Below are positions 1 to 9,698 of a stretch of 10,579 nucleotides of DNA, one piece after another. The stretch's first letter is position 1, and each line of letters starts with the position of its first letter. The stretch comes from Amoeboradix gromovi X-113. Lineage: Eukaryota > Fungi > Sanchytriomycota. The stretch spans positions 1-10,579 of the forward strand of contig JADGIF010000340.1 of the NCBI GenBank assembly GCA_018985225.1, written 5' to 3'. The notes beneath the pieces were generated by a model. The model was not told the DNA's origin. It made no database searches and saw only the letters and a list, made by a program, of their open reading frames with translations. Made by a program: the position numbers and the translations under genes.

Positions 1-114
1 TGGATGAAAGAGTAAGGGAATAGCTGTACAGAATATTTATTTTCCTTTTATACTCGTCAACTCCGCAACTAGCTGAATGTCCACTCGCTTCTTAAATAAT
101 GTTCCAAATTGTTA

Positions 115-151
115 CAGAAAGTTAGTCCAGTTTTTATATTTAATGTCCCAT
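115..151 (+). repeat. Dispersed ~35-bp motif, copy A (cagaaagttagtccagtttttatatttaatgtcccat)
   Basis: 115..150 is 32/36 identical to the reverse complement of 6013..6048. It shares the exact 15-mer ttagtccagttttta (122..136) with the reverse complement of 5498..5512. It lies about 100 nt upstream of the peroxiredoxin ATG. Confidence 0.85.
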
Positions 152-251
152 ATGGATTTACTCCTATAAATGCAATCAAAAACATTTAGTGATTTAGTGA
201 AATCATGTCTGTTGTCTAAAAAATCACCAAAAGGTATAAAAGGAACGCTAT

Positions 252-917
252 ATGACTGAATTACAAATGAGCAACAATTTAAAAATCGGTTCTAAAGCTC
301 CAGATTTTGACGCGGAAACTAGCCATGGTAAGATGAACTTCTACGAAGCGCTTGGCAATAAATGGACGATATTCTTCTCTCATCCAAAAGATTCCACACC
401 GGTCTGCACTACTGAGGTCTCAGATTTAGCCAAGCACGCAGCAGAATTTGATAAGCGAGGATTCGGGTTGATTGGCTTGAGCTGCGATGACTTAGAATCT
501 CACAAAAAATGGTTAGCAGACATCGAAAAATATGCAGAATGCAAAGTAGAGTTTCCACTCATTGCCGATGAGGACCGATCTGTGGCAACCAAATTCGATA
601 TGTTGCAGGACCCATCAAATGTGGATGATTCTGGAAAGCAGCTATCAGTACGATCAGTCTTCTTTATTGATCCAAACAAAACTATTCGAGCAATGCTGTT
701 TTATCCAGCCGCAATTGGAAGAAATACCTTAGAGTTGCTGCGAATTGCAGATGGGCTACTACAGTTGGACAAGTTCCAGTGTTCAACACCGGCTAACTGG
801 ACGCCTGGAAAGCAGATCGTTGTTCCACCCAGCATGAAGGGCAGTGATCTGGACAAGTACAAAAATGTCAAAGAGGAATTGCCGTATTTAAAACTTGCAG
901 ATGACGCGCAACAATAA
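252..917 (+). CDS. PRX1: 1-Cys peroxiredoxin (Prx6 / yeast Prx1 class)
   Basis: Family motifs present: IGSKAPDF, FFSHPKDSTPVCTTE (Prx6 signature PVCTTE), FPLIADEDR, VRSVFFIDP (catalytic Arg), YPAAIGRN..ELLR and TPANW.PG. The true start may be the second ATG at 267, because a TATAAA at 235..240 is only 11 nt before ATG 252. Confidence 0.96.
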   Translation: MTELQMSNNLKIGSKAPDFDAETSHGKMNFYEALGNKWTIFFSHPKDSTPVCTTEVSDLAKHAAEFDKRGFGLIGLSCDDLESHKKWLADIEKYAECKVEFPLIADEDRSVATKFDMLQDPSNVDDSGKQLSVRSVFFIDPNKTIRAMLFYPAAIGRNTLELLRIADGLLQLDKFQCSTPANWTPGKQIVVPPSMKGSDLDKYKNVKEELPYLKLADDAQQ

Positions 918-1374
918 ATTTAAGTTGATTTATTTCTGGATCCTAGCCAAATTAGCTTCACTTTAGTTGAACTGCAATATCATGTAGCTGCATTACGCTG
1001 TAAATCTTAATACTCCAACAAATCAGTTTCAGAGCATTTTTAGATTTTTGTGTGCCTTAGTCGATGTTATAGTAATTCAACACCTTCTAAAATGCTTCTT
1101 GTATTTCGCTCTTCATTTCCAATGTGCTACATATTACAGTACTTTTGAGCGACTGGATATAGAAACTATATTAAGACTGGAATAAGCTGCGGAGCTATAG
1201 AAAGATATTAATCCAGAACTTGTCCATTTGCAACACAATTCAGTGATGTAGGTTCTTAGGCAGACGCGGAAAGGTTATAACCGACTCCAAAAATGGTACT
1301 CCACAATTTGCATTGAGTTTGCACCAATCATTATCCAAACAAAATTAACAAATTGCAACTCTTTATTCAAGTTC

Positions 1375-1680
1375 ATGTCGCAAGCAGAGAGTTTTCAGTT
1401 TAGTGTAAGTGAAAAATCTCAAAATAAACCAAATGGCTTATACAAACCAAGCCCCAGAGAGATGGTACACCACGATTATCAGACAGCAACACGTGAAAGA
1501 AAAAAAGCTGAAGGTGGATATGGTGCTTTGAATTGCTCAAAGTTAACCTTGGGATACTCTACTTGTTGCTTTTGCGTTGTAAGCGTAATCATTATTATTG
1601 TGATAATCATAGCAGTATCAAGCTCCAGAGCGGCCACTATAAAATCAACAGTTACTTCGAATTCTAAGACACGTCATTAA
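1375..1680 (+). CDS. Hypothetical small single-pass membrane protein (101 aa)
   Basis: ATG-started ORF with a polar N-terminus, a Cys cluster (CCFC) and one very hydrophobic helix (VVSVIIIIVIIIAV), then a Ser/Thr/basic tail. ATTAAA overlaps the stop codon. No family recognised. Confidence 0.55.
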   Translation: MSQAESFQFSVSEKSQNKPNGLYKPSPREMVHHDYQTATRERKKAEGGYGALNCSKLTLGYSTCCFCVVSVIIIIVIIIAVSSSRAATIKSTVTSNSKTRH

Positions 1681-2216
1681 ATGTTTATAATTTACTGGTT
1701 TACTTTCTACATGTGATCTTTTGCAACCATATTACTCTGCCCTTGCTTGTTTCAAACAATAAGTACTCGCTAAAAAACCTTGATTTCTGGAAAAAACAAG
1801 GGTTTCCACAGAGAAGTAAATAATTACTTTGCTATTGATTGCAAGGTGATTTCACAAATTATGAAACAATTATATAACTATGCAAAGATGCTCCATTTAG
1901 AGAGATGGAGTTCATGTAACTTAGCTACCTAGTGGCTGGAAGACAGGTTTACTACAATTTTTTCCAATTAAGTCTTCTACCCTTTGTTAGAACACATTCA
2001 ATGATTTGAAGATCATTATAAAATGCGTTCATATTTCTATCTTTAGGGACATCATTTTAAGTGTGCCCGCATAAGATTGGACCCTGCAAGGTTATTTCGC
2101 TTTTCTACTGCTCTACCGTTACAGAGCATTTCCTGTGTGCTTTTTGGGAAGAAATTGCTAGCCAGCAGATATTGCTTTTAAACGAAATAGCTGTTATATA
2201 TCATGTTAATTTATTA

Positions 2217-5200
2217 TTACTGTTTCTTTGTTCCCAACAAGTATGGTCCAATAAACTCAAAGAACGCAAATTGCTTTGCACTGGTCCCATATTTATACAC
2301 AAATCTACTTGCTAAATACGTCCCAAATATAGCTCGCATATATGGATCAGGCACTCTATTCATAATCTTCTGCAGTCCCACAGTTTCAATCAACAATTTT
2401 GGCAACGCTTCCATCAACACCGTAGTTCTTAATCCTTCGTTCTCATAAAGACTACTATTGACCAGTTCCTCCTTCAATTGAACTATAGCGTAGCTTAGTT
2501 TGTCGCTCAAAATACTTTTTGGTGTGTTGGTTAACTCTCCTTCTCTCCACAAACATTCGAATTCTAAATCAGCATTCTTTTCGATTTTGAGGTGCACCTG
2601 CTTGATGTAATCGTTATAGAATGCAGGCATTTCCCCATTCTTCTGACCCATCATATGCTTTTGATACTCTGCATCATCAAAGCTTAGTGCAGCCAATACT
2701 TCCATACTACTACTAGTAACTCCTCCCTTGTTAGCACTAGCATCTTTAAAAATCACGCAACCACTCTGTTCTAATCTCAATCTTGCGTCTTGCGTAATGA
2801 ATAAATTAGCACCTTCTACCATCCATTTAAACTTGCATTTACCATTTGTAATTAGTCTGCCTACATTGCTAAGATCTATGCTCTCTGGTCTACCTCCGCA
2901 GGGCACGAATAAGTCAAATTTGTATTCTTGTAATAAATGAAACTCATTTCTAAATGCCAATCCACTGGAGACAATAATTGGACTACCTACAGGTACAACT
3001 GTATATCCGTTAGCTGTAGGCTGCTGGACAGTAGCAGGTGGCAATTTCACATCTTTACTCTCTACGCTTATGTAAAATCCATACTCGCTTAGCAATTTAA
3101 CATCGAAGTTATTGCTCATTAATCTGGCATTTGCCAATCGTAACAACTCTTGCCTGTTTAGTCCCATTGGATCCCATAAAACACCGCTACCGTCTACGAT
3201 ACCCACAGTAATATCCAAAGATGTTTTGATCTCATTACTTCCTAAATCACCATCTGGTCCACCTGTTTGTAATTTAGTGGTAGTGTACTCATTAATCCCT
3301 AACTTACGATAGATACCCAGCACGTACTGGTGAACTGATTTAGTGGTCATACCAAACAGATCATGAGGTATTCCACCAAGTGATTGAGACTTTCCAGTTG
3401 TGAATGCTTTCCAAAACCCTGCATCTCTCTTTTTAGCATGCAATGCAGCCCAATCCATGACGTCCGCAGTTCCCTCATCTGGCCCAAAGAACAAGATTTC
3501 AGGGACTCTTAGTTTATCAACTAAAAGTTCTTTAATGCCGGGAGTGTGGCCTGGAAGGAGCAGATCTAGAATCGAATCCGTGTACTTCATAAATGCTTGC
3601 TTGCTCTTATCTTGGTGCAACACATCCATTAAAATAGTACCTTTACTACCTCCTTCAGGGATGTCCTTGTTCTTCTTTTGCTGAGTCAGTGCTAAAGCAT
3701 AGTTTTCATCAAATAGTGTTCGCAGATTGATACTGTAATTCTCTTTGTTTCTACTTTTGATGATTCTAATTCCACCACGGGCAATATCTCTGAATCTGAC
3801 ATGGAAGCCTCTGAACTCTGTTCCTACAACCATAAATATACCATAGGGTCTATTAGGATACTCCACGTCCGGCAGATACATAGGATCTAATCGGAATGAC
3901 AGCGCAACCTTTGTTGGCGTGTAAAAGTTGGTTTTGAGCACGTGTCTGTTAAACTGCAATATACATTCAAACACCATAAACTCGTGTTTATTACTGGTAG
4001 ACTTCTTGATCAGCTCCAGTAACTCATCGTCAGAATAGATTTGCTGTTTATTGATTCGTTGATACGATAAAGTGGGATGAGCTGTTTGTTCTTTGGCACT
4101 TACATAGTGATCCATCGCAAAATGAATATATAGCTGCTTGATCAACTCTGGGTACAGTGACATAATGTCCAATATATACTCTCGAGTAAAAGTATCAGTT
4201 CTTAACCTCTTCTTGATGTTGACTAGTACTTCCACATGGCTAGGATCCGTTAAAACACTAGCCAGTGACTTGTACTCACTTCCCAAGCGATTGAGAAAAT
4301 GCTGGCAAAATATCCAAGCACAATGTCCGTACATTGTTTCTTGGACTGAGAGAAGATTTAGCGTGAAGAACTGCTTGTGAAGTGGGGTGATGGGCAAGCA
4401 ATAGATTAAACTAGCTTCCTTGATGATTTGATGAATGGATTGTTCAATAGGAATCTTGATGTTAGCAAGGGGATTCAAATAAAAGGACATGATCGTGATA
4501 CCATTACTGAATTGCTCAACGTATTTACGGGTACTATATAAATCATAGTAATGGTACAAGTCAGACATTGCGCTAAAAAAATTTGTAGTAGATTCCTGCT
4601 TGTACGCAATTACAAGTCGCTGTTCTCTACTACCTTTGATATTAAACGATTCAATAACAGGACCTGTTCTAGTTAGAGCTTCACGCATGCAAGATTGATA
4701 AAGTTCAAGCGTATTGTCAGTAGCCTTTTCAAGAAATATCACATCCCCTACGAGTCTGATGTCTAACTGCTCGATATCATTAGGTGAAGGCTTATTAAAC
4801 TGACATTTCTTCAAAAAGTAGCAACGAACCTGGGTTGAGTTGTCTTGCGATACAGTGCCGTGTGATCTAAAAGATTCTAAACGATACAACTGCTTAGAAT
4901 CAAGATATTTGGAATCAATTGTACGTTCTACTTGGGGACCAGTACTTGTAGATACACCTGGTTTGCTACTAGATATAATAACAGCATAGTCTTCCTCATA
5001 TCGTTCTAAATGAATTTCTAAAGGCTGATCGGTAGTAGCGCTGGAATAAGATGTAATTTTAGACCCGTACAAAGCGACAATGTGATTAGCAATTGTGGAA
5101 ACAGCTGAATGTTGGAAGTATTGATCGTCAATGCCTAAATGACCATAAAACCAGGAAACCTCAGCATCAACTAACTCAGCTGGTAGATATCCTTTATCAC

Positions 5201-5309
5201 GAATATTTTGGCCAACCTCTTGCATCTGCTTGGATTTATCTTTGAAAATGGTGCCATGGTAACCAGCATCACTTTGGCCTGTGTTATTGAATGAATTGAC
5301 GTTCAACAT
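2217..5309 (-). CDS. GDH2: NAD-specific glutamate dehydrogenase, large (~1000 aa) fungal/eukaryotic type
   Basis: 1030-aa ORF with diagnostic blocks FRGFHVRFRDIARGGIR, QQKKNKDIPEGGSKG, FFGPDEGTA, FTTGK..GGIPHD..GMTT, QTGGPDGDLGSNE, FVPCGGRPE, EGANLF and KDASANKGGVTSSSMEV, plus the long N-terminal region typical of fungal Gdh2. Confidence 0.97.
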   Translation of the reverse strand: MLNVNSFNNTGQSDAGYHGTIFKDKSKQMQEVGQNIRDKGYLPAELVDAEVSWFYGHLGIDDQYFQHSAVSTIANHIVALYGSKITSYSSATTDQPLEIHLERYEEDYAVIISSSKPGVSTSTGPQVERTIDSKYLDSKQLYRLESFRSHGTVSQDNSTQVRCYFLKKCQFNKPSPNDIEQLDIRLVGDVIFLEKATDNTLELYQSCMREALTRTGPVIESFNIKGSREQRLVIAYKQESTTNFFSAMSDLYHYYDLYSTRKYVEQFSNGITIMSFYLNPLANIKIPIEQSIHQIIKEASLIYCLPITPLHKQFFTLNLLSVQETMYGHCAWIFCQHFLNRLGSEYKSLASVLTDPSHVEVLVNIKKRLRTDTFTREYILDIMSLYPELIKQLYIHFAMDHYVSAKEQTAHPTLSYQRINKQQIYSDDELLELIKKSTSNKHEFMVFECILQFNRHVLKTNFYTPTKVALSFRLDPMYLPDVEYPNRPYGIFMVVGTEFRGFHVRFRDIARGGIRIIKSRNKENYSINLRTLFDENYALALTQQKKNKDIPEGGSKGTILMDVLHQDKSKQAFMKYTDSILDLLLPGHTPGIKELLVDKLRVPEILFFGPDEGTADVMDWAALHAKKRDAGFWKAFTTGKSQSLGGIPHDLFGMTTKSVHQYVLGIYRKLGINEYTTTKLQTGGPDGDLGSNEIKTSLDITVGIVDGSGVLWDPMGLNRQELLRLANARLMSNNFDVKLLSEYGFYISVESKDVKLPPATVQQPTANGYTVVPVGSPIIVSSGLAFRNEFHLLQEYKFDLFVPCGGRPESIDLSNVGRLITNGKCKFKWMVEGANLFITQDARLRLEQSGCVIFKDASANKGGVTSSSMEVLAALSFDDAEYQKHMMGQKNGEMPAFYNDYIKQVHLKIEKNADLEFECLWREGELTNTPKSILSDKLSYAIVQLKEELVNSSLYENEGLRTTVLMEALPKLLIETVGLQKIMNRVPDPYMRAIFGTYLASRFVYKYGTSAKQFAFFEFIGPYLLGTKKQ

Positions 5310-5482
5310 TGCCGTAACAAGGAGCCCAGCTTCATAAACAATTCAAGGGGAAATTAGCCAATATCGCCAATGCAGGTGACTAGAAAGTTAAAATGTGGCT
5401 AATTTTACGATTCTAGATTGACATTAATGATCTCATCGTCCTTTAAATGTATCACCAATAACCAATTTTTCATTAGAAGTAA

Positions 5483-5513
5483 GTGGAACGCCCACTGTAA
5501 AAACTGGACTAAA
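5483..5513 (-). repeat. Dispersed motif, copy B
   Basis: The minus strand reads tttagtccagtttttacagtgggcgttccac, 24/31 identical to the consensus, with an exact 15-mer shared with copy A. It lies about 175 nt upstream of the GDH2 ATG on the gene's sense strand. Confidence 0.7.
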
Positions 5514-5988
5514 TAATTTAAATTAGTACCTATATTTCATCTCCTAAAGATTTAGCAAAATAATTTTGCTGCTTTTTCTTTTCTTTAAAGTTAGTCTTTC
5601 ACAATTTTTTTAATACGTGGTTTGTTGTCTTCACAACCTTTTGGAATTCCGTTGGCAACCCGATTGCTTAAGCGTGATCCAAATGCTCTAGAAAAACCTT
5701 CGTATATTGGCTTTGTTTTCTTTTCTTTGGAGGTACATCCTTAGTCGTACAATAGCCTAATGTTTTATTTCTTCTCACAAAGCATCATATAAATGAGAAC
5801 CAAAGTATTTATTTCAAGTTTTGTCTAATTTTGCAAAGGCTTACTATTGTAAGTGATTATCCATACCTTTTGCATACCAACGATGAATTGATTACATAAC
5901 AAGTAGCACTTTACTTACATGAAAGATAATATGAACTGAATCTATTGTTGCTAATCTACCATAGTACTATGTTCGGGCTCTGGATTGG

Positions 5989-6048
5989 TTTATGTTTGAT
6001 GTATCATACAATTAGGACATCAAATATAAAAATTAGACTAACTTTCTG
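5989..6048. repeat. Inverted pair of the motif: partial + arm (5989..6007) and full - copy C (6013..6048)
   Basis: tttatgtttgatgt (5989..6002) pairs with acatcaaatataaa (6017..6030) at 13/14 positions plus one G:T, with a 14-nt loop. Copy C is 32/36 identical to copy A. Confidence 0.85.
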
Positions 6049-6391
6049 AAAAAGTTCGAATCATTATTTCAAGTGTATTAACCGATAGTAAACTAAAATA
6101 AATTAATCTTTTCAAGCCTATTATTTTAGTATAAAAGCTTTTCATCCATCAAAATCTTAGAAACAATGATTAATAAGAAGAGAAACCAAAAAATAAGTGA
6201 TACGAAAGGTGGTAAAAAGAAAAAGATAGAGTATCGTCTAAGAGATTGCACCTTTTGCTTAGATACTCAAAGACCTTACTTGAAAGAGATATTGGGTCAT
6301 CTTGTTTTATTTTAAAGAGAGGAATGACATTAATGAAAAAGAATTGGTTTGAAAGAAGAAGGACTTTTATTAATAATAGTATTTCTTCCTT

Positions 6392-6520
6392 ATGGAGCAC
6401 CTCCTTTAAAAAAGACTTTGTCTAGTTTTATATTTGGTGTCCCATTTAGGAATTCAAATATACCATAATTGAAAATGTTGAATCTTCGACTTATTTTAAT
6501 TTTTATATTTCATAATTCAT
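6392..6520. repeat. Cluster of alternating-orientation motif copies around copy D (6417..6447 +)
   Basis: D shares the exact 17-mer tatttggtgtcccattt (6431..6447) with 8009..8025. It is flanked by degenerate minus copies at about 6392..6418 (tggagcacc..., as in copy E) and 6447..6462 (14/16 identical to 6013..6028). A degenerate plus copy lies at 6488..6520 (core taatttttatattt). Confidence 0.75.
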
Positions 6521-6761
6521 AAGCTTAAGGCCAAATACTAAGAATATTTGGTTGCGAATGGATTAGCATTGCGTCACGGTGTCAACACACGTGAATGCAT
6601 TAAAATAGCACGAAATCTAAAGGCTTGTCCCGGTACCTAAGAAAAGCTTGACGGTAAAGAGAGTGAGTCTAAAGCAACTATTTCTAGGGAAATCGATTAT
6701 GTATAGTAGCTGTGACATTTAACAAAAAGCGATTGCAGACTTTCCTATTGCATGTTGCGTT

Positions 6762-6790
6762 TGGAGCACCAAATATAAAATTGGAGTAAC
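6762..6790 (-). repeat. Dispersed motif, copy E
   Basis: The minus strand reads gttactccaattttatatttggtgctcca, which aligns to copies F and D (gttactc head, tatttggtg core). Confidence 0.8.
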
Positions 6791-7342
6791 TCAAAAATCT
6801 CAAAGTTTTGAAAATAAGACTTCAGAATCATTGAAATGTGATCTTTTCAAAAATATTAGTATTGGGTTGGTACGACTATTATTCATGTCTGTTTATTATT
6901 GAAGAGATATTTATGTAAAACGAATGTAATAATTCGATAAACTTTATTGACCAACCAAACTCACTATTATTTACACAATTCTGATATTTCCTTAAAATAA
7001 TTTTAAGTCCAAGGCTATTTATTTTATAATCTAAATAAGTTAGAGGAAATATAGATATATCAAGATTATTACCGAATTCGTTGTAAACTTTGGACCCAGA
7101 TGAGTATATGACTTGTTTAAAATAAACATGTCTGGAAATTTCATTAGATTTTTGGACGAGCTTGGAGAACCAAATCAAAATGATGTAGTATAAACAATAA
7201 CAATGGAATTTAAATATTTTTATTTCAATTTTAGTTACTAACTAATTTGAGTTAACCACTTAATGTTTTCTGTGAAATTTAAATATGATATCCTGTTGCT
7301 CAATTATAGTGCTTCAAAAATAGGCAGGTGATTGAAAATCAC

Positions 7343-7657
7343 ATGGGAAAAGAAAAATACAAAAGAGTTATTGAAATAGATGATATTCGGCCTATGGATG
7401 AAGTATCTTTCTAGACTATGAGTAAAAGTCACTCAATTTTGGCTGTTCTGGGACTGGGGACCGCTATTTAAAGTGGACCTGTGCACTTGCAACTACTTGG
7501 AAAACATTAAAACCACAACTTTTTTAGGAAAAAGGATCAATTGTTACAACGAGACTGCATCAAATCCAAAAGAAGCAATACCTGCACCAACAAACAATAA
7601 ATGAGATTTGAAGTTACTTTCATGTTTGTCTTTGAATTAAAGGATGGGGTTTTATGA
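7343..7657 (+). pseudogene. Possible heavily decayed IS630/Tc1-like DDE transposase fragment
   Basis: IDDIRPMDEVSF* is followed after a frameshift by NFGCSGTGDR, resembling the first-D block (DExxF...G.S..G.R) of IS630/Tc1 transposases. Further on is RFEVTFMFVFELKDGVL*. This is resemblance by eye only and needs stops and frameshifts. Confidence 0.2.
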
Positions 7658-7920
7658 AGATAAGGACTTAGTTTAAAAAAATAAACAAATTAGATTATAG
7701 AGTTAAAAGCAAGCATTATTGTAAAAGTGTAACATAATTTAGACGAAATAAAGACCTGATTTATTCACTTAATAGTCAAGGATTTTGTATCGTAAACATT
7801 TTCAAATAAGCGATTTCAACTTATCCAGGAGTTAACCGTGATCTAATTGAAATGCGTGTTTATCTCTGTATGCAGTAGTACTAATGAAGGCTCATATTTT
7901 GATCACGTTGGTTGACAATG

Positions 7921-8025
7921 GTTACTCTAGTTTTTATGTTTGGTTTAGAATATTATTTTCAAATCAAGATATCTCGAAATGCTGTTTTAAAAGTTACTCT
8001 AGTTTTTCTATTTGGTGTCCCATTT
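7921..8025 (+). repeat. Tandem pair of the motif: copy G (7921..7944) and copy F (7989..8025)
   Basis: The exact 15-mer gttactctagttttt occurs at 7921 and 7993, 72 nt apart. F shares an exact 17-mer with D and ends 29 nt before ATG 8055. Confidence 0.85.
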
Positions 8026-8054
8026 GTAAAGGGTTTGGAGATAAAACAACAAAC

Positions 8055-9107
8055 ATGGGTCATTATGAGACTCTTCAAATTAGTCAAAGCGCTACTCAAG
8101 AAGAAATCAAAAAGCAATTCAGAATGCTTAGTTTACAGAATCATCCGGATAAAGGAGGAGATCCTCAGAAATATCAAGAGATGGTGAGCGCATATCAAGT
8201 GCTAGGCGACCCTGAGAAAAGACAAATCTATGACACTTATGGTGATATAGGAATACCACTACAGTATATACGTGGTATAAAATATGTTTTATTCGGTGTT
8301 ATTTTAATTTTAATTTTGTTGATTATTCAGTTATTGTTATGGGATCAGGGCAGCTGGTTTTTGATATTTATTCCCACCTTCATTATATACTCTATAATTT
8401 TAATAATTATTCTGGACAGCATTTTCCATCCTCCAACTCCAGGTGAGCTTGATGAGATGGAGGAAATATCTCCCAAAGATGTCCGACTAATGAGCGGTCT
8501 TTTGCTTTCGATATTCTCTGTTTTTGTTACTACTCATATACTTTTGCTTTTGAAATTAGAGATATTCCATTCCTGGAGATTAGAACTTATAATGATCCCC
8601 TTTTGGCTGCTTGAGAGTTTTATATTTTTGCGAAATATGGTGTCATTTTTTGTTCCTCCTAGTCTACCAGAGAATGCTAAAATTGAGTTTTTATTCAAGC
8701 TTGTTAACATTATTGTTAATCTTTGCACTATTTCGTTTGCAGTCTTATTGTGTATTCGACAATACTTCATTTTTCAGTGGGCGCTGGTATTTTTACCGTT
8801 GTTTGTAATGCCATTTGTTAGGTGCGTTGTCCCGATATACTGGTGCAGGCTAGACAGAGCAAATATTGGATCTCAGGTTCCTGTATTTATATGGAATGGA
8901 TTCTTAGAATTGCAAGTTGTATTATTTTGCTTGAGCACCAATGGAATAATACAAACAAGAGAGGCATTTATACCAATACTGATAATGTTGTTTCTTCTAC
9001 TGTTGTTAGTAACGATCACCGGAATCGGTTTCATTCTCTCGTTAAAGAAGGAAAAAGAAATTGTGCAGCCTATAACAGATCCTGGTAGAATGATAACAAG
9101 TAAATAA
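8055..9107 (+). CDS. DnaJ (J-domain) multi-pass membrane protein with TMEM185/transmembrane Fragile-X-F-like region
   Basis: Complete J domain starting right at ATG 8055: HYETLQI...EIKKQFR.LSLQNHPDKGGD..KYQEM..AYQVLGDPEKRQIYDTYG, including the HPD motif. About 7-8 hydrophobic helices follow, with repeated W..(V/I)F.P motifs (WFLIFIP, IMIPFW, WALVFLP, AFIP). The open frame extends upstream to 7884, but that extension runs through two repeat copies. Confidence 0.88.
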   Translation: MGHYETLQISQSATQEEIKKQFRMLSLQNHPDKGGDPQKYQEMVSAYQVLGDPEKRQIYDTYGDIGIPLQYIRGIKYVLFGVILILILLIIQLLLWDQGSWFLIFIPTFIIYSIILIIILDSIFHPPTPGELDEMEEISPKDVRLMSGLLLSIFSVFVTTHILLLLKLEIFHSWRLELIMIPFWLLESFIFLRNMVSFFVPPSLPENAKIEFLFKLVNIIVNLCTISFAVLLCIRQYFIFQWALVFLPLFVMPFVRCVVPIYWCRLDRANIGSQVPVFIWNGFLELQVVLFCLSTNGIIQTREAFIPILIMLFLLLLLVTITGIGFILSLKKEKEIVQPITDPGRMITSK

Positions 9108-9356: not shown

Positions 9357-9698
9357 TCAGATCTTCTCATTAGAAAGAGGACGGTTCAGCATCGCATTCT
9401 TTCTCTTCATAGCTAGGTATTTCATATATTTCCAGTATTTAAAGTACCTCAAGCGCTGCAAATATCTTCTTCTTTTTGAATACCAAGCCTCGTATTGAGA
9501 TCTGGTGATCCTTTTGTTCTGTTTTACTCTAGTTCTTGGCATTCGCGACTTCCTTGAAGGTGGATAGTTGAAATATTGCACAAATGCCTGATCTCCTCTC
9601 ATAGTAAGTGGCAAGTTGTTCCATGAATTTTGTCGAGTATTCTGAATTAAAACGGACTGCGAGTACGCAAATGCAATATTGAAGATCAGCCAGATCAT
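9357..9698 (-). CDS. Hypothetical small, highly basic protein with a putative short signal peptide (113 aa)
   Basis: ATG start, a short hydrophobic N-terminus ending in A-x-A (MIWLIFNIAFA), and an Arg/Lys/Tyr-rich C-terminal half. No family recognised. Confidence 0.6.
   Translation of the reverse strand: MIWLIFNIAFAYSQSVLIQNTRQNSWNNLPLTMRGDQAFVQYFNYPPSRKSRMPRTRVKQNKRITRSQYEAWYSKRRRYLQRLRYFKYWKYMKYLAMKRKNAMLNRPLSNEKI

Follow-up and report, generated by a model that had tools for sequence, protein, structure and literature searches.

Two groups of described transposons come closest to the element reported here. Spu-1 of Spizellomyces punctatus is a ~2.1-kb Fanzor1 locus bounded by 30-nt inverted repeats (IRs), with no transposase inside (Saito et al. 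2023, PMC10432273). It has a CA upstream of its left IR, a CATA target-adjacent motif (TAM) and an ωRNA that spans the right IR, and the 24-Mb Spizellomyces genome also contains 134 "ghost" loci of ~450-550 nt that have no open reading frame (ORF) (PMC10432273). SPu-1 is described with terminal inverted repeats (TIRs) of 33 bp and with putative TA duplications, and Sola2-type Fanzor1 elements with 4-bp AWWT duplications (Bao & Jurka 2013, PMC3627910). Here, we describe a TIR-bounded repeat family in the fungus Amoeboradix gromovi X-113, recognized from a dispersed motif on a single contig. This contig (C592; JADGIF010000340.1) was analyzed over its entire 10,579 bp, which we call the window; the assembly to which it belongs comprises 10.55 Mb in 1,319 contigs.

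Is the motif more than a product of AT-rich sequence? The original prediction held that the window contains seven copies of a ~35-bp intergenic motif, that copies A and C are 32/36 identical, that conserved coding sequence is free of full copies, and that AT-rich chance does not account for them. All seven copies are present and align to a single consensus, aaaGTTAGTCyAGTTTTTATATTTGGTGTCCCAttt; copies A and C differ at 4/36 positions, and a profile scan of the conserved coding regions found no copy. The argument against chance was borne out by counts across the 10.5-Mb assembly: 1,596 matches (782+814) to a 19-mer core with ≤2 mismatches and 1,551 matches (759+792) to a 29-mer with ≤3 mismatches, compared to 0 for the reversed-pattern control in each case. 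In the window itself, the 30-mer consensus with ≤3 mismatches gave 2 matches versus 0 in 200 shuffles. The motif is real and hugely over-represented.

What does the motif belong to? We conclude, with a probability of about 0.9, that it is the 30-bp TIR of a cut-and-paste DNA transposon family composed mostly of Fanzor1-derived ghost elements (family A), with a sister family (family B). The motif had been taken for a ~35-bp element; it is real, but its copies are the terminal 30 bp of longer elements rather than free-standing units. TIR or miniature inverted-repeat transposable element (MITE), the first of the identities that had been offered, was right, and neither a foldback element nor a protein-binding site is needed. 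Read inward from either terminus, the TIR is GGGACAYCAAATATAAAAACTRGACTAACT, and it occurs as two end types, left (..TTTGATGTCCC) and right (..TTTGGTGTCCC). The copies and elements of the window are as follows.

1..149, minus strand: family-A miniature element, left arm, cut by the contig start and running leftward out of the window (nhmmer with the 27-copy profile, positions 4-176, E=1.5e-40).
120..149, plus strand: copy A, left-end TIR, with its terminus at 149 facing the peroxiredoxin gene.
5483..5513, minus strand: copy B, degenerate solo TIR relic (15-nt exact block; 22/28 aligned TIR positions match; nhmmer E=0.02).
6014..6443, plus strand: complete family-A miniature (ghost) element, 430 bp, left end to right end (nhmmer E=6e-92, profile positions 4-486).
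6014..6043, minus strand: copy C, left-end TIR of the 430-bp element.
6225..6311, plus strand: Fanzor1 C-terminus remnant, second CxxC of the zinc finger and degraded RuvC-III region (sequence reading and alignment to the element consensus).
6374..6444, plus strand: right-end scaffold, a predicted ωRNA-like hairpin with the right TIR as its 3' arm (covariance model R1, 79.2 bits, E=1.7e-15).
6414..6443, plus strand: copy D, right-end TIR, covering the site at which intact relatives have the Fanzor stop codon (TTA GTC TAG).
6763..8021, no strand assigned: family-B element, 1,259 bp, same TIRs, different arms, flanks GTTT and ATTT.
6763..6791, minus strand: copy E, terminal TIR of the family-B element.
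7921..7944, plus strand: copy G, TIR-like subterminal repeat lying ~70 bp inward of the family-B terminus, not itself a terminus.
7992..8021, plus strand: copy F, terminal TIR of the family-B element, with its terminus 33 bp upstream of the DnaJ ATG.

The 430-bp element is flanked by AATT (6010-6013) and ATTT (6444-6447), and the coding frame of its Fanzor1 remnant is broken, where other copies read ..RLRKCTFCLDAQRPHIFERDAGSSSFILKRG... The DNA around copy B (5310-6006) is single-copy. A possible partner remnant lies at 5989-6002 in the opposite orientation; it agrees with the TIR tip at 13/14 bases, and 0.75% of shuffles score as high. An old ~520-bp element that abuts copy C may have had copy B as its left end.

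To describe the elements across the genome, we used motif copies lying inside contigs. These occur as inverted pairs 278-594 bp apart and gave 27 complete elements, which, once oriented and aligned, yielded a ~480-bp consensus with two distinct ends, GGGACATCAAATATAAAAACTGGACTAACTTTCTG... on the left and ...AAAAACGAGTTAGTCTAGTTTTTATATTTGGTGTCCC on the right. In the 27 complete elements the two ends are inverted repeats of each other over 30 bp, with 2 variable positions. Matches to end-specific 37-38-mers numbered 603 for the left end and 697 for the right end (controls, 0), that is, roughly 600-700 elements or ~3% of the genome. Family-A copies have the properties of MITEs: they are of high copy number, 278-594 bp long and without a complete ORF, keeping only a ~70-codon gene tail. 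In the only public run that contains this DNA, a DNA run, the summed contig word depth over 5300-8100 climbed from ~50 in unique sequence to 22,000-45,000 within the element, a rise consistent with hundreds of copies, although depth does not measure copy number. Other copies appear in the same run as internal-deletion variants. No joint in the contigs of this run spans the whole element, and no empty site was observed among them. One terminus, on C66 (L017:1427-1538), carries 2-3 copies of the TIR core in tandem, head to tail (..GGTGTCCCATTTCTAGTCTAGTTTTTATATTTGGTGTCCC..).

We then turn to the origin of the family-A interior. The consensus right arm reads ..EYRLRKCTFCLDAQRPHIFERDAGSSSFILKRG..NELV*, with the tail pattern CTFC..ERD..ILKRG; from this reading of the sequence, the arm is identifiable as the second half of the TnpB/Fanzor zinc finger plus the RuvC-III "RD" motif. 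Longer copies were also found. On C33, a 1,660-bp copy between both TIRs holds ~440 frameshifted codons in two frames, of which a 291-aa piece falls just short of the Pfam cut-off in its match to PF07282 (E=3.6e-5). On C1157, a 436-aa open frame runs from the contig start into the right TIR and keeps DPG, ESYTS, CxxC..CxxC and ERD. An all-against-all HMMER search recovered full-length relatives of 585-642 aa at 33-37% identity, and the tails of the miniature elements are 50-60% identical to residues 547-608 of one of these, the 616-aa P0003. A profile of the relatives and genomic copies matched the Guillardia theta Fanzor1 (PDB 9CER) across its RuvC and zinc-finger region (E=5e-7); SpuFz1 was not matched by the family protein profile at E≤1.

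An intact relative was found in a second assembly. P0005 (642 aa) lies within a 2,071-bp element on a 2.3-kb contig of GCA_013565655.1. The left end of this element starts GGGACACCCAATG, and its right end, TTAGTCTAGTTTTTATATTTGGTGTCCC, equals the element consensus at 30/31 positions (96.8%). Its ORF ends ..L V stop, as TTA GTC TAG within the right TIR, the same as in the consensus of the window's genome. Taken together, the homologous tails, the longer copies and the intact P0005 element argue that family A consists of internally deleted Fanzor1 elements. Family A comprises ~450-bp non-autonomous elements formed by internal deletion of a ~2-kb element with Fanzor1 as its only gene. Such copies keep both TIRs, a left arm of ~150 bp and the final ~70 Fanzor codons (zinc finger, RuvC-III), with the ORF stop codon inside the right TIR. 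No link of the family to giant viruses emerged: P0003, the closest full-length protein, on a metagenome scaffold, has no such TIR; an 18-nt TIR pattern gave 8 matches in IMG/VR, none reaching the full TIR or pairing; and single-sequence and profile protein searches of viral contigs found no relatives.

A divergent histone H3-like ORF has its end at the start of the P0005 contig (L098:1-144; ..AKRVTLMVKDIQLARKLRGDT*). The genome of the window also contains a second, different TnpB/Fanzor family, for example on C542 (L040), at C363:1568-2113 and at C1184:5144-5614. Its PF07282 matches are much stronger than those of the TIR family (best 9e-20, among 150 scored of 560 candidates), some of its open frames reach 672-748 aa, and its copies are without the TIR motif.

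How do these elements sit in their target DNA? An exact 4-bp duplication flanks 10/27 pairs, versus 7% expected by random flank pairing (binomial p=8e-6), and the flank consensus is A-W-W-T on both sides. The atypical 4-mers ATAG, ATTA, AAGT, TTAT and AAAA also occur on both sides, which favors a 4-bp duplication over a longer TIR. In flank profiles based on 23 left ends and 48 right ends, left ends were preceded by ..(A)CA-NN-T, with C at -5 and A at -4 in 23/23. The mirror G was present at only 29/48 right ends; the flanks are, that is, asymmetric. We infer that the conserved CA before the left end is either a Fanzor TAM or a target preference. The flank of copy A in the window, ATATGG, agrees with the ANNTG target pattern.

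At C154:77-1833 (L099), a family TIR pair surrounds an open frame of 395 aa in which a Schlafen AlbA_2 domain is recognized (PF04326, E=2.4e-13). The flanks are AAAT and ATAT, and the left one is without the usual CA. This locus is possibly a cargo-carrying element.

Elements with other interiors share the same TIR. Family-B arms (~200 bp and ~120 bp) recur elsewhere in the genome at 71-90% identity, and copy G is kept in other family-B copies, as seen in an alignment with the C1317 and C1012 copies; L074 has tandem partial model matches. At C556:20102-23838, a TIR pair bounds a 3,737-bp element with subterminal repeats, a 450-aa ORF without an assigned family and a 253-aa fragment of DUF7869 (E=1.6e-17). 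The ends of this element are 74-75% identical to the G/F and E arms of the window. A search of the genome with PF25273 (DUF7869) gave 29 matches, and DUF7869 proteins are multi-copy across eukaryotes and unnamed. Family B (copies E, F and G) shares the TIR and derives from a 3.7-kb element holding a DUF7869 putative transposase. This transposase, possibly of Sola type, would mobilize all of the TIR-sharing elements in trans; we regard DUF7869 as a candidate mobilizer.

Just outside the 3.7-kb element, at C556:17908-19968 (L102:427-2487), a 687-aa frame joins DUF7869 to a homeodomain at its C-terminus (PF00046, E=9e-10), and close homologues with both domains are public (P0020-P0022). On C1105 (L100:180-1418), a DUF7869 open frame of 400 aa follows 11 bp beyond the terminus of a right-end TIR. 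In the window, the family-B interior at 7283-7545 is 98% identical to the entire 265-bp contig C334; the remaining interior is single-copy.

The right end of family A may also encode an RNA. A predicted hairpin occupies the final ~55 nt of the right arm, with the TIR as its 3' strand (UGG.GCACC ... AAAAAC-loop-GUUUUU ... GGUGU.CCA). In this fold 97.7% of cells pair, versus 41-63% with the partners slid, and RNAalifold recovered the same fold from seven sequences of three lineages. One pair is compensatory, C-G to U-A in the C1157 copy, and accounts for the G/A difference between right and left TIRs. With the covariance model, copy D scored 79.2 bits and copies C, F and A scored 16-26 bits; the scaffold is therefore carried by copy D only. 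When the genome was searched with a covariance model for divergent right ends, every copy recovered was near-identical (150, scoring 90-101 bits), with no added covariation. Our prediction is that the right-end hairpin is an ωRNA scaffold and that the flanking DNA is the guide. The right end may be, or may once have been, transcribed into an ωRNA in which the hairpin scaffold ends in the TIR and the guide comes from the flank.

Several observations weigh against the interpretation of the motif as the TIR of a Fanzor1-derived transposon family with its mobilizer and guide RNA. First, long elements with these ends do exist, as the original prediction had suggested checking, and some carry Fanzor1 and one a DUF7869 fragment, but no intact transposase gene was seen between two such TIRs in the assembly, nor was a complete intact Fanzor gene. 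Second, full-length DUF7869 ORFs (586-687 aa) adjoin elements but lie outside recognizable TIR pairs; DUF7869 homologues carry no Sola name, and we found no paper mentioning DUF7869. Third, 17/27 pairs have no exact duplication and are often one base off, although the copies look young; our guess is that the non-matching duplications reflect exchange (recombination) between the many copies. Finally, the right-end copies were picked by an exact core match, which hides variation, and barely vary, so that covariation support amounts to a single pair, and an Rfam scan of the window returned nothing at the motif or at the right-end scaffold.

Can the nuclease, the RNA and the transposase be placed in one scheme? 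The ~700 right ends could be live guide-RNA genes for a functional Fanzor1. Re-cutting of vacated sites, at a left-flank TAM predicted to be WWAC or ACANNT, would then retain the DUF7869-moved element by RNA-guided homing. The C1157-type ORF retains the D, E, zinc-finger and D motifs. We consider this joint scheme doubtful.

Could the motif instead serve the genes of the window? The window has ~35% GC and carries eukaryotic genes without introns, three of which are conserved.

252-917, plus strand: 1-Cys peroxiredoxin, ATG at 252.
2217-5309, minus strand: fungal-type NAD-glutamate dehydrogenase (GDH2).
8055-9107, plus strand: DnaJ membrane protein, ATG at 8055.

Small ORFs at 1375-1680 (101 aa, with a hydrophobic stretch) and 9357-9698 (113 aa) had no Pfam match. 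Sense copies precede all three conserved genes: copy A lies 101 bp before the peroxiredoxin ATG, copy B before GDH2 and copy F 33 bp before the DnaJ ATG. The motif also includes a TATA-like run, so that it could be read as a core promoter or transcription factor site in which a TATA-like TTTTATATTT stands before an initiator-like box, GGTGTCCCA, in sense orientation upstream of genes. Sampled termini, however, were not restricted to a fixed position and sense orientation at gene starts. Gene 3' ends are faced about as often as 5' ends: 17 versus 22 of 49 termini, the 22 falling to 15 once ambiguous read-through frames are removed, and the L003 and L010 copies point at gene 3' ends. A promoter would also leave the inverted pairs, the duplications and the enclosed Fanzor remnant unexplained, and we regard this explanation as very unlikely. 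The promoter-like appearance arises because the TIRs point outward, so that the copy nearest any flanking gene faces that gene. Some inserted TIRs may secondarily supply promoter function.

The mode of transposition also has an alternative. Fanzor/TnpB genes are classically tied to IS200/IS605- or IS607-like elements, which move by single-strand or serine-recombinase mechanisms, or to Helitron-type elements. The left-flank motif ends ..TWAC, recalling TTAC-type targets, and most pairs have no exact duplication, both of which would suit such an assignment. However, 30-bp TIRs and 4-bp duplications are present here, and those families are without both (PMC3627910). In addition, one element bounded by the same TIR contains a DUF7869 transposase fragment. 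We give these families only a slim chance and retain the assignment to a cut-and-paste transposon.

The position of the copies within the assembly has a bearing on their nature as well. The published Amoeboradix gromovi genome (10.5 Mb, 36% GC) was assembled with SPAdes in single-cell mode, and the genome paper does not mention transposons or repeats (PMC8371127). Many motif matches lie 30-300 bp from contig ends and point inward; among the listed exact plus-strand matches, 36/51 left ends and ~31/48 right ends are ≤350 bp from the contig start. In two short contigs that we read, the motif is the end of a longer repeat extending toward the contig end. Copies cluster at contig ends because a high-copy transposon breaks a short-read assembly, and the contigs do break inside these repeats. 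These data suggest that the family accounts for a large share of the assembly breaks. Amplification or assembly artefacts (chimeric inverted junctions) are scarcely credible as the source of the inverted copies: the single-cell assembly mode and the location of about two thirds of the listed copies ≤350 bp from contig ends would fit, but the latter is expected of any high-copy repeat in a short-read assembly, many copies sit within contigs and have unique flanks and target duplications, the ~480-bp consensus is defined and carries a decayed gene, and an independent public assembly has a near-identical right TIR beside an intact homologous gene.

The window and C54 (L010) begin at an identical element position, and their first 37 nt (1-37 in each) are reverse-complementary. 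This looks like an assembly-graph overlap inside a repeat, not biology.

How does the family compare to the described systems? As in Spu-1, a single Fanzor1 ORF lies between ~30-nt inverted repeats with no transposase within the Fanzor element, and, as with the Spu-1 ghosts, many ORF-less derivatives keep both repeats and the region beside the right repeat. A CA stands upstream of the left repeat in both; here the CA is separated from the IR by a 4-nt duplication, a spacing unlike that of Spu-1. Our predicted scaffold, like the ωRNA of Spu-1, spans the right repeat. The differences from Spu-1 are the ~700 copies in 10.5 Mb versus 134 ghost loci in 24 Mb, the 4-bp AWWT duplication versus a putative TA, a protein profile that matches GtFz1 and not SpuFz1 at E≤1, and a Fanzor ORF that runs into the TIR.

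The AT-rich AWWT duplications (ATAT, AAAT, ATTT) are those of the dictyostelid Sola2-type elements DFa-1/2/3 and PPa-1/4/5 (PMC3627910). In both cases Fanzor1 is a passenger in TIR elements, and relatives with a transposase (a putative one in our case) share their ends with relatives that lack one. The TIRs of the Sola2-type elements are shorter (12-21 bp versus 30 bp here), and they combine the Sola2 transposase and Fanzor in one chimeric element, whereas here the two occur only in separate TIR-sharing elements and the putative transposase is DUF7869. Classical MITEs such as Stowaway and Tourist are also short, non-coding, high-copy, TIR-bounded deletion derivatives in gene-flanking spacers, presumably mobilized in trans; unlike in those, the interior kept here is the 3' end of an RNA-guided nuclease gene with a predicted guide-RNA scaffold, not random DNA. 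The original prediction did not recognize the element, and its novelty is weakened by these parallels: the architecture is that of the published Fanzor1 ghost (PMC10432273) and of Sola2-Fanzor1 (PMC3627910). This is a new family of a known kind, with the anatomy of Spu-1 and its ghosts and a Sola2-type duplication.

The family leaves the known picture of such elements unchanged. For Amoeboradix, it explains much of the genome's intergenic DNA, until now unannotated content, as well as a misleading promoter-like motif upstream of genes. It also makes this compact genome a very dense natural collection of Fanzor ghost elements, and their strict left-flank motif offers a candidate TAM. The TIR held in common with an element carrying a transposase fragment supplies a testable mobilizer candidate for TIR-type Fanzor1, for which Saito et al. 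found none in Spizellomyces. If the homing scheme were true, the strict left CA versus the loose right pattern would be the genome-wide footprint of that selection, and the cognate transposase that TIR-type Fanzor1 elements have long been missing would be identified through the shared TIR.

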